A stretch of 63,766 bases of DNA, filler included, from Olpidium bornovanus S191 (GCA_017911155.1; 32 parts of 32 records of this genome joined end to end with filler, not necessarily neighbours in it), one strand, 5' to 3'; numbered from the whole stretch's first letter, positions 1,733-39,554 are shown. Notes: a model not told the origin generated them from the sequence alone. Made by a program: numbers and translations.

Positions 1733-2917
1733 GCGTACGGCCCTCCGCTCAAAAACCGTCAATCGGGAAGCTCTGGGACGGTACCAGACAGCACAGGTGA
1801 CGCAGAGAGAGTTACTTCCGTCACCCGTTTGCGCTCAAACAACTCTGGATTATGTAAAGTACGGTGCTGTGAGAGCCGATTTGAAAAAAAAAGGCGGCTC
1901 TGCCATCAGCAAGGCCCTCACTGCAAGGCCTGGTTCAGCTCGATTCCGCGTCGCTCGGAACGTTTTCGTTCGCGGCGAACGCCTGGCCAGAAGAGCGCGT
2001 GTTTGAGGGGGTCCCTTTCCGTGCGGTTGATCCCGGCACACACGGTACGTTGATGAATAAAATGGGTCTAGGTGGGTTTTCGCTTCGTTCCGCTCCTGGT
2101 CAGCAGTTGGTACACAGCGCTTTGATGCTTCGAGTTGTGTTTATTCGGCACCGCCACCAGCAACATTTCGAAGAAACGACGTGCGGCGCACGCCGCGCCG
2201 CCGGAATAAAACTCGGCCGCCTCAAAAATCACGATCGTAAAAGGGAGGTGTGCGGTGGAAACGCCAATCGGCGGGTCGTGCACTTATTGCCGGAATCCAA
2301 GATAACCAACAAGACGGGCCGGCAGATGTTAAAAACCAGGGTGTCTCGTAACCCTTCATCATCCCCCCCCCCCCCCCAGATTCAAAGAACTGCCCGGGAC
2401 CCTCTCCCCCCCTAGCTTCCGATCCCGTTTTTTTTCCCTCCGCGGCAGTTATCCTGTGCTCTTCCATTTGTGTGCGCTTTGAGAAAGCTCTCCTCGACAA
2501 ATTTCTTAACAGGAATAAAAGTTTTAAAAAGTCTATGTATCTTGATGTAGAGACCTTGCGGCTATCTTGTCGGACGCTTTTTGTACAACCGCCCCGTTCG
2601 CGTCCACAGAGGCTCGAGGCGAGACGCGTCAGCGAAAAGGACAGGTCGTGAGGAGAGGGACGACCTTAAAACCGCTACGGCTCGCGTCTCACGTTAATTT
2701 TTTTTTGTCTTCGACCTCCGACGCGGTTATCCGAAAGAGAGGGTCGTACGCTTGCCAGACGCCGGCAGCAGGTGACGTGCGTGCCCAAGTTTTTGCTCTC
2801 AAGGGCTTGCTTTGCAGGGCCGACGAGTGCCCCTTTTTTCGTCAGATCCAACCCTTCGCGGCGGTTTTCGTTGTTTTCGTTGAAGAATGCCGGCCCCTGC
2901 AAAAATTTCCCCCCTCT

Positions 2918-3390
2918 TCACGGATCGGCGACGTCGGGTTCGGGGACCGCCGGGGCGGGTGCGGGGAAGCCCAAGTTGTCGAACAGCTGCCGCCACTCGT
3001 CCAGACGCGGCTCTATCGCGCGCAAGGCTTTCACGGCGTCGTCGCCCTCGGTTCCGGCCGACTGGAGGATCCCGCTCAGCAGCGACGCCGCCTTCAGAGC
3101 CTCCACCACTTCTGCCCTCTCGGTGACGGCGACCCGGACCATTTCGCCGAGAATCGTAACCAACGGCTTTTGGTTGTTGTTGTTGTCATCATCAGCGGTT
3201 ATCAGCGGAGGCGACCGGCACAGTCAGCGGCCCTGGTCTCGCCCTTCCCGCTACCTCCCCCTCACCCCCCACCCCCCCACCCCCCCACCCCCCCGGGTGC
3301 ACGGAGGGAGGTGGACGCGCGCATGCTCCTCCGCCCACACGTACGCCTTCGCCTTTCGCTTTCTCCTGCAAGGCGTTGGCGCTCCTCATG
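2918..3390 (-). CDS. hypothetical protein fragment (spliced, runs off contig)
   Basis: Helical-looking ORF VTILGEMVRVAVTERAEVVEALKAASLLSGILQ...PRLDEWRQLFDNLGF, with an upstream exon ending at a GTACGT donor. Family not recognised. Confidence 0.35.
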
Positions 3391-38346: not shown

Positions 38347-39554
38347 CAAAACCAAAGGTAACTTGCCACCCTTCCCGGCACCGAGATTAGCACGAGAGAG
38401 GAACAGAACAAATCTAATGTTCAGCCTACAGTACCAGAGATGCAGAATAAGCAAAACCGTGGCATGTACCTTGGTAAATTTCGTCTCAAACAGCCTTAAA
38501 CTCGCCGGTACGGAGGCGAGTCTCTTTGCAAGAGTCCGGCTCCACTGGCCCCTGCTGAGCCGCGCCAACCTGCGGAGGACCCTCATCCACATGGGCTTGT
38601 CGAGCGACCGCCACTGCGCGATGGCCAACTTGGTGAGCACGATTTCCCAGCTCGCCGTCGAGAACACGTCGGGCTCCACCGCCTGTTTGCAAAGAGATTT
38701 GCTGGCCCGCCCGGCGGCGGCCGAGGACTCCGCCTGCCGCGCTCCGGAAACTTCCGCGCCGTTCTGAAATGCGCGCAACACGTCGTCTTCCGCCCCGTCG
38801 TCCTGCCCCAGGTCCTCGGCGAGGTCATCGTCGTCGTCCAGTTCGGGAACGAGGTGTTCCCGCCTTCGGGCGATGCGCTCCGCCTTCGTTTCGGGCGGCT
38901 CGGCCGGACGGACGGAAAAGGAAGGCGGCGACTCGCCCGCCAGTAATTTGGCAAACGCGTCCTCAGCCCAAAACGCCTCCCGGCCGCCGTCCTCCAGGCG
39001 GTCGATCCTTTCGTTGATCCGCTGCAGCTTCTCCTTAAGGCTGACGTGTGCACCTTTCCTCTTCTCCTTCTTCCTTTTCTTCTTTTTTTCCGATCGTATC
39101 TGGTCGCGTTTCGCCGCGTTCATCATCGCTGCTTCCATGATTGCGGCCTGCGCTTCGAGGGAGAGCGGAGGCACGGTGGTCCGTTTGGCCGTCAGCTTCC
39201 CGCGGGCGAGGTTCTGCTTGATCTTCGTAATGCCGTCTAGCCGATCAAATCCATGACATATGGATGACGCGCACGACGCAGATAAGCCAAAGAACCCGCA
39301 CCCCGCGAATGAAATATCTCACGCAGAATAAATACACGGCAAATCGTACCGCTGAACAACTTGCGGATATCCCTGTTTGTGACGCCGTCAAGCGGATCCC
39401 GTCCTCTGCTGTCGCGCTCCGTGAGCCAAGAGGCCATGTTGCTTTCCACGCACCAGTCAACCAGAACCTCGACGACACTGGGCAAGCACTGCTTGCAGGC
39501 GTAATGAAAAACCGTTTCTCGGTTGTTGCCGTACTTCGCCTCCATCGATATTGC
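38347..39554 (-). CDS. ankyrin-repeat protein with a TRANK1-like (putative RelE-fold) segment, internal fragment
   Basis: Exon 39554-39350 has ankyrin-like ETVFHYACKQCLPSVVEVLV...DSRGRDPLD. Exon from 39236 has a K-rich and an acidic linker, then SWEIVLTKLAIAQWRSLDKPMWMRVLRRLARLSRGQWSRTLAKRLASVPASLRLFETKFTK. Confidence 0.65.

Follow-up and report, generated by a model that had tools for sequence, protein, structure and literature searches.

A divergent TRANK1-family gene fragment with the first half of a pre-helicase domain of predicted RelE-type fold

On the minus strand of positions 38347-39554 a gene fragment was identified which is a divergent, previously unseen member of the known TRANK1 family. 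The window, i.e. the whole stretch of DNA that was analysed (63,766 nucleotides, filler included), holds an internal fragment of this spliced gene. It carries the N-terminal half of a domain that lies directly ahead of a UvrD-like helicase in related proteins, and models of two relatives support a RelE/YoeB/YafQ fold (RelE/ParE superfamily) for this domain. With moderate confidence we propose that it serves as an RNA- or ribosome-engaging head, which is probably an endoribonuclease in most members of the family.

Gene structure of the fragment

Frame analysis of the minus strand revealed two open stretches in different frames. Exon 1 (39350-39554, minus strand) is truncated by the edge of the piece, and its translation contains the ankyrin-like repeat or repeats NRETVFHYACKQCLPSVVEVLVDWCVES and GRDPLDGVTNRDIRKLFS. 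It is followed by intron 1 (39237-39349, minus strand; 113 nt, GTACGA...GGCTAG), a GT..AG intron in phase 1, and excision of this intron fuses both reading frames with zero stops. Exon 2 (38470-39236, minus strand) encodes the linker and the first half of the conserved domain in an open frame; at its 3' end, the codons for FTK directly precede GTACAT. Spliced together, exon 1 (39554-39350) and exon 2 (39236-38470) give 324 residues without a stop codon. The base composition changes at these borders, with a GC content of 48.7% in intron 1 versus 56-63% in the flanking exons. GC3 amounts to 79% in the coding frame of exon 2 and to 77% in the minus coding frame, compared with a GC content of 47-49% in both introns. 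The fragment is genuine eukaryotic coding sequence with short GT-AG introns.

The last 123 nt are AT-richer and were assigned tentatively to a second intron and a third exon. Intron 2 (38371-38469, minus strand; 99 nt, GTACAT...GGGAAG) has a GC content of 47.5% and contains CTAAT; counted from the T of CTAAT, the distance to the acceptor AG is 20 nt. Exon 3 (38347-38370, minus strand), again truncated by the edge of the piece, encodes GGKLPLVL, which would be the start of strand 3 of the domain. As 99 nt are a multiple of three, the frame stays open even if intron 2 is not spliced. Nevertheless, unspliced read-through of exon 2 to the edge of the piece is less likely, because the GC content falls to 47.5%, the GTAC donor is the same as in intron 1 and splicing restores KGG[RK]. 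The resulting junction of FTK with GGK fits the FSKGGR and KF[ST]KGGR of the relatives.

A gene on the plus strand was rejected, since the long open reading frames found there are shadows of the minus frame and the codon bias suits the minus frame only. A structured RNA was also considered; no Rfam family matches the piece.

Relatives in the TRANK1 family

The C-terminal 110 residues of the product were compared with 1.84 billion representative proteins in an exhaustive phmmer search (E<=0.001). Exactly three proteins matched, and all of them align at query residues 37-110, i.e. with the conserved segment SWEIVLTKLAIAQWRSLDKPMWMRVLRRLARLSRGQWSRTLAKRLASVPASLRLFETKFTK (SWEIVLTK...LFETKFTK). A first-pass annotation of the DNA had quoted this peptide, which is indeed encoded at exactly 38470-38652 on the minus strand, and had compared it with a segment of TRANK1. 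The search bears out this parallel: the best match, P0001 (XP_041361942.1; 970 aa; E=1.1e-5), is named "TPR and ankyrin repeat-containing protein 1-like" by NCBI, followed by P0002 (1675 aa; E=4.6e-5) and P0003 (1926 aa; E=1.2e-4), and the relatives P0013 and P0014 read WEVECT...LASGEWQPHLCKKL...LNLFEAKF. With BLASTP, an identity of 42% over 72 aa was determined between the product and P0003 (pairwise E=4e-14), in an alignment which crosses the junction of exon 2 and exon 3. A family HMM, built with the window left out, scored the window's sequence with 44.4 bits, versus 9.7 bits for the highest-scoring one among 1000 shuffles. The similarity of the conserved segment is above chance.

When the complete spliced product served as query in a word-indexed protein search, no match was obtained at E<=1 and thus no close orthologue. 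This search was limited by its word filter, as the exhaustive search then recovered the relatives. The conserved segment had no match in sequence searches of Pfam and PDB.

In P0001, P0002 and P0003 a Walker A motif (GTGKTT) is located about 240 residues downstream of the domain. The same spacing of about 240 residues was observed in those ORF pieces that are long enough to reach Walker A. The Pfam cut-off for UvrD-helicase is reached by P0001 and P0003; for P0002 there is only a sub-threshold match to UvrD_C_2 (24.7 vs 27.4 bits). P0003 furthermore contains Pfam ankyrin repeats (residues 712-785) and a lysine-rich cluster, both ahead of the domain. A layout of TPR, ankyrin and SF1-helicase domains had been given for TRANK1 in the first-pass annotation. 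From this layout, ankyrin repeats (P0003) and the UvrD-like helicase were recovered in the relatives, and a Pfam TPR was absent from P0001-P0003 at E<=0.01. The piece itself stops inside the domain, 8 codons into exon 3; the helicase is known here from the relatives only. An exact 30-mer of the gene had no counterpart in the metagenome and viral contig collections.

By profile and sequence searches about 50 further members were collected, mostly ORF pieces of invertebrate-type genomes. The family consensus, WE..T ... G.W ... L.L[FY]E.K..KG.RI.WE ... IIRVW..V..HD, is found directly upstream of the helicase; the window contains the first half of it. Here the window's sequence falls with a WEIVLT-type, non-animal-looking subgroup (P0002, P0003, P0048 and L005), which is only 39-41% identical to the animal sequences. 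L005 is an AT-rich, intron-bearing relative on a metagenome contig (Ga0215267_1073, 6.2 kb), extending from 2577-3261 on. Its domain is 47% identical to that of the window and is completed by strand 4 and helix 3, after which Walker A and the helicase motifs follow. A named vertebrate TRANK1 was not among the matches of a further word-indexed search, which were ORF pieces of invertebrate and protist type only; the link to TRANK1 therefore comes through NCBI's name for P0001. Taking together phmmer, BLASTP, the HMM, the collinear order of the parts and L005, homology between the segment and the domain that precedes the helicase in TRANK1-like proteins is well supported by sequence comparison.

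Several observations were made on the relatives themselves. The introns of L005 interrupt the gene ahead of VPTSLKLY and behind QQHYTK, and no intron follows KFSK. These positions differ from those of the window's gene, so intron positions in the domain are not conserved. P0003 is a single ORF on L001, a Logan contig of 6464 nt (SRR3322357); this contig is probably a transcript assembly, as the ORF is uninterrupted over 5.8 kb. P0053 and P0055, a partial protein of Volvox africanus and a related fragment, are similar to the family in its linker and Walker A part, with FPPAS..YT..KFY...DFPF...ILLGRSGTGKTTCAV. Both are fragments without the RelE-fold region. Judged from these motifs, the TRANK1 family seems to reach green algae.

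The region ahead of the domain had been described as an ankyrin-like exon with a basic and acidic linker, and these parts were found again. The ankyrin-like exon (39350-39554) matches Pfam Ank_3 weakly and below the cut-off (E=0.038, 15 bits). Its ankyrin-like stretch is collinear with the Pfam-supported repeats at residues 712-785 of P0003. The basic cluster EKKKKRKKEKRK (39055-39090, minus strand) is lysine-rich and resembles a nuclear localisation signal; it may be such a signal or an RNA-binding tract. Lysine-rich clusters occupy the equivalent architectural place in P0003 (KKGGKKKGKKGRKGARK) and P0002. At the DNA level, the cluster of the window corresponds to an imperfect tandem repeat rich in TTC/CTT (39056-39091, plus strand), the sole tandem repeat in the piece. 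It is followed by a probable helical or coiled stretch, SLKEKLQRINERIDRLEDGGREAFWAEDAFAKLLA (38938-39042, minus strand), assigned from sequence only; P0003 and P0002 have a similar stretch, to which it can be aligned loosely. The acidic run ELDDDDDLAEDLGQDDGAEDD (38782-38844, minus strand) has a counterpart in P0003, where the acidic stretch SSDDEEDVIEF stands directly ahead of the domain. Ankyrin part, basic cluster, helical stretch, acidic stretch and domain follow one another in the same order in the window, P0003 and P0002.

Predicted fold of the pre-helicase domain

The N-terminal half of the domain (38470-38667, minus strand) comprises strand 1 (WEIVLT), helix 1, helix 2, a loop and strand 2 (LRLFETKF). 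With the start of strand 3 these are the only elements held by the window, and the fold was taken from models of the relatives. The P0003 domain (about 120 residues) was modelled with AlphaFold2 on an alignment of 19 sequences, with a mean pLDDT of 89.5 and a pTM of 0.83. The model contains a strand at 9-12, helices at 14-22 and 25-39, strands at 60-64, 70-79 and 93-103 and a helix at 106-122. For the P0001 domain, which is 41% identical to that of P0003 and has a 25-residue insert, AlphaFold2 predicted the same topology (pLDDT 87.1). As both models used largely one 19-sequence alignment, they are not fully independent. The predicted fold consists of strand 1, helix 1, helix 2, the antiparallel strands 2-4 in one sheet and an extra C-terminal helix. 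An initial strand plus T, two helices and a further strand had also been read from the sequence in the first-pass annotation, in agreement with the models.

A comparison of the models with known structures by AlphaFold2 and Foldseek had been suggested there as a check of the supposed RelE fold. In Foldseek searches against PDB, the top 19-21 matches per model were all RelE, YoeB, YafQ or ParE-type toxins, with TM values of 0.56-0.75 (normalised to the toxin chain) and a probability of 1.00 for the toxin matches of both models. For the P0003 model, 35 of the first 37 matches belong to RelE, YoeB, YafQ, ParE-type toxins or Cami1. Among the individual structures, 7v6w_F was matched with E=5.7e-4, probability 1.00 and TM 0.73, and E. 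coli RelE (4fxe_E) with TM 0.71, both target-normalised; archaeal RelE (1wmi) and ribosome-bound RelE (4v7k) are included as well. The top 19 matches of the P0001 model are all of the RelE/ParE superfamily, with target-normalised TM values of 0.59-0.75. Thus, the RelE superfamily dominates the matches of two models. Beyond the toxins of toxin-antitoxin systems, the Foldseek lists include Txp40 (7xbj), an insecticidal protein, as well as Cami1 (8phb).

At the level of sequence, the expected RelE/ParE profile match failed to appear. No such match to the domain was obtained at E<=10 in Pfam (with the segment and 19 family members), NCBIfam or a PDB profile search. A direct comparison of the family with E. 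coli RelE by hhalign yielded a probability of 5% (pairwise E 0.0078, 72 collinear columns), and with E. coli YoeB a probability of 0.3%; neither is significant. The RelE and YoeB queries were the exact PDB sequences. Hence, membership in RelE applies at the fold level and not to a curated sequence family.

These results also bear on the question whether the likeness to RelE is a modelling artefact, produced by a shallow alignment of a small alpha/beta domain which in reality would have no relation to RelE and act as an accessory domain at the N-terminal side of this family's helicase. The alignment had just 19 sequences, sequence-profile support is lacking, and the Foldseek values are modest: E-values range from 5.7e-4, the best, to 1e-1, the identity to the toxins is 5-20%, and the query-normalised TM among the toxin matches is 0.41-0.55 at an rmsd of 3-5 Å. 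The low query-normalised TM is, however, accounted for by the extra helix and the insert of the family domain. Moreover, two target sequences with 41% identity led to one topology at pLDDT 87-90, and the match lists are almost purely of the RelE superfamily, with probability 1.00 and toxin-normalised TM 0.56-0.75. We regard an artefact as highly unlikely. A RelE/YoeB/YafQ fold of the TRANK1-family domain is supported by the models.

Conserved residues, possible function and known systems

Residues are numbered according to the P0003 fragment. W8, T13, G41 and R98 are invariant in the family alignment, and E9, E62, K64, R70, W73, E74, S80, R82, Y93, E95, W100 and H106 are near-invariant. In the model, strand 2 carries E62 and K64, strand 3 has R70 at its start, and strand 4 carries R98, with H106 closely behind it; together with E74 they form the conserved polar residues of strands 2-4 and just beyond. 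Catalytic residues of the toxins are K52, K54, R61 and R81 in RelE, R65 and H83 in YoeB and H63 and H87 in YafQ. By secondary-structure register only, we infer that the conserved polar residues of the family occupy the catalytic places of RelE, YoeB and YafQ. The half-domain of the window keeps W, E, T, G, K, E and K, and all conserved residues of the visible half are retained.

The proposed function would combine the parts of the protein as follows. The RelE-fold head may engage RNA or the ribosome and would probably act endonucleolytically in most family members, the UvrD-like SF1 helicase would use ATP to move on nucleic acid, and the role of the ankyrin and TPR parts may be partner binding or sensing. 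The broader claim that an active RelE/YoeB-type endoribonuclease head is joined to the SF1 helicase throughout the TRANK1 family, from protists and possibly fungi to humans, appears doubtful to us.

The main alternative, which we consider rather unlikely, is a RelE/ParE fold without nuclease activity, which would serve as a module for binding RNA, ribosomes or proteins or as a regulator of the SF1 helicase. Superfamily members of the ParE type do not cleave RNA. A catalytic motif of RelE, YoeB or YafQ is not recognisable in the sequence of the family, members without K64, R70 and H106 are still retained, and the tentative exon 3 of the window is without R70, W73 and E74. The extra long C-terminal helix, the 25-residue insert in animals and a motor of the UvrD type, commonly a DNA helicase, also fit a non-nuclease role. 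Against it, many charged residues of strands 2-4 are near-invariant from animals to protist-type sequences, which exceeds the needs of fold stability. Furthermore, the members without K64, R70 and H106 have lost them jointly in one subclade, and this resembles the decay of one functional site. An endoribonuclease in most members thus remains the reading that we prefer.

The subclade in question consists of P0035, P0036, P0038, P0040 and P0042. Here K64 is deleted, R70 is replaced by P and H106 by A, Q or W; W8, T13, G41, E74 and R98 are retained, and the residues that determine the fold are kept. From the alignment this looks like the decay of a single active site in an inactivated paralogue lineage, and the loss may have been one evolutionary event.

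For the window's gene, the residues encoded by the tentative exon 3 are atypical. GGKLPLVL stands against GGRILWEE or GGRVIWER in the relatives, with K, L and V in place of the near-invariant R70, W73 and E74. A proline falls within the expected strand 3, and GC3 of the 8 codons is only 50%. Going by the sequence, the acceptor could be misassigned, or the window's copy could be divergent or inactive. A decaying paralogue or pseudogene without a function of its own would agree with the exchange of three near-invariant residues, with the drop of GC3 from 77% to 50%, with the lack of a close orthologue in the word-indexed search and with nearest relatives of only 40-47% identity. On the other hand, eight residues are too few for a judgement and the call of exon 3 is possibly wrong. 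In addition, 324 codons over two exons are free of stops and frameshifts, the codon bias is strong, the splice sites are clean and the visible half-domain retains every conserved residue. A pseudogene is therefore improbable in our opinion.

TRANK1 is listed among the interferon-stimulated genes (PMC6880163), which fits a role in defence, though only loosely. In published abstracts, TRANK1 is presented as a robust risk gene for bipolar disorder, and little is said to be known of its role there. In a full-text literature search with incomplete coverage, no paper combined TRANK1 with RelE (whole words) or TRANK1 with UvrD, and two comparative-genomics papers which treat the RelE (BECR) fold widely make no mention of TRANK1. 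Within this incomplete coverage, the pre-helicase domain of TRANK1 has not been described as a RelE-type fold; an earlier description may exist elsewhere. An unannotated pre-helicase domain with the fold of ribosome-dependent RNase toxins would provide a testable biochemical idea for a family whose function is unknown. If the head were active in the whole family, TRANK1 would be a eukaryotic, interferon-linked effector for translation shut-off, directed at the ribosome or RNA and derived from a bacterial toxin fold, and this would be the first biochemical activity for this bipolar-disorder risk gene. As the window contains a divergent member of non-animal type, the layout of ankyrin part, basic linker and RelE-fold domain would be old.

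Among the closest known systems are TRANK1 (lupus brain antigen 1) and animal TRANK1-like proteins, whose pre-helicase domain is, by sequence comparison, homologous to that of the window. In TRANK1-like relatives the order is ankyrin repeats, conserved domain and UvrD-like SF1 helicase; the helicase and TPR parts of the window's gene would lie beyond the piece. There are also differences in insertions. Animal TRANK1-like proteins have an insert in helix 1, which the window is without, and a long one separating strand 3 from strand 4, which is absent from the window's subgroup, where its relatives are visible.

With RelE, YoeB and YafQ the family domain shares the predicted fold and strand order, and conserved basic residues and a histidine would lie at comparable secondary-structure positions. 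There is no significant sequence similarity between them. RelE/ParE toxins are paired with an antitoxin, whereas the family domain has no antitoxin partner and forms part of a larger eukaryotic protein with several domains, encoded by a spliced gene; the longest relatives seen have about 1,700-1,900 residues. It also has an extra C-terminal helix compared with the RelE toxins.

A RelE-fold module that is likewise fused and not paired with an antitoxin is present in Cami1 (CARF-RelE), a ribosome-dependent RNase ancillary to CRISPR. Its structure 8phb was among the Foldseek matches of the P0003 model (E 0.07-0.08, TMq 0.52-0.55). In contrast to the TRANK1 family, Cami1 is a prokaryotic protein whose CARF domain places it under the control of cyclic oligoadenylate, and it has neither a helicase nor ankyrin repeats. 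The fusion of a RelE-fold module into a larger effector is thus known from Cami1; new here would be that the module is eukaryotic and joined to a helicase.

Schlafen 11, 13 and 14 and HELZ2 are interferon-induced proteins with a nuclease and an SF1 helicase. Their layout, with an RNase-type domain joined to the helicase, resembles that of the TRANK1 family; the nuclease folds (Schlafen core and RNB, respectively) are unrelated to the TRANK1-family domain, and homology with the window would not be expected. Like TRANK1, these proteins figure in lists of interferon-stimulated genes. The TRANK1 family would exemplify an RNase fold of the toxin-antitoxin type within a eukaryotic helicase machine, in parallel to Cami1 in bacteria and to Schlafen and HELZ2 in vertebrates.
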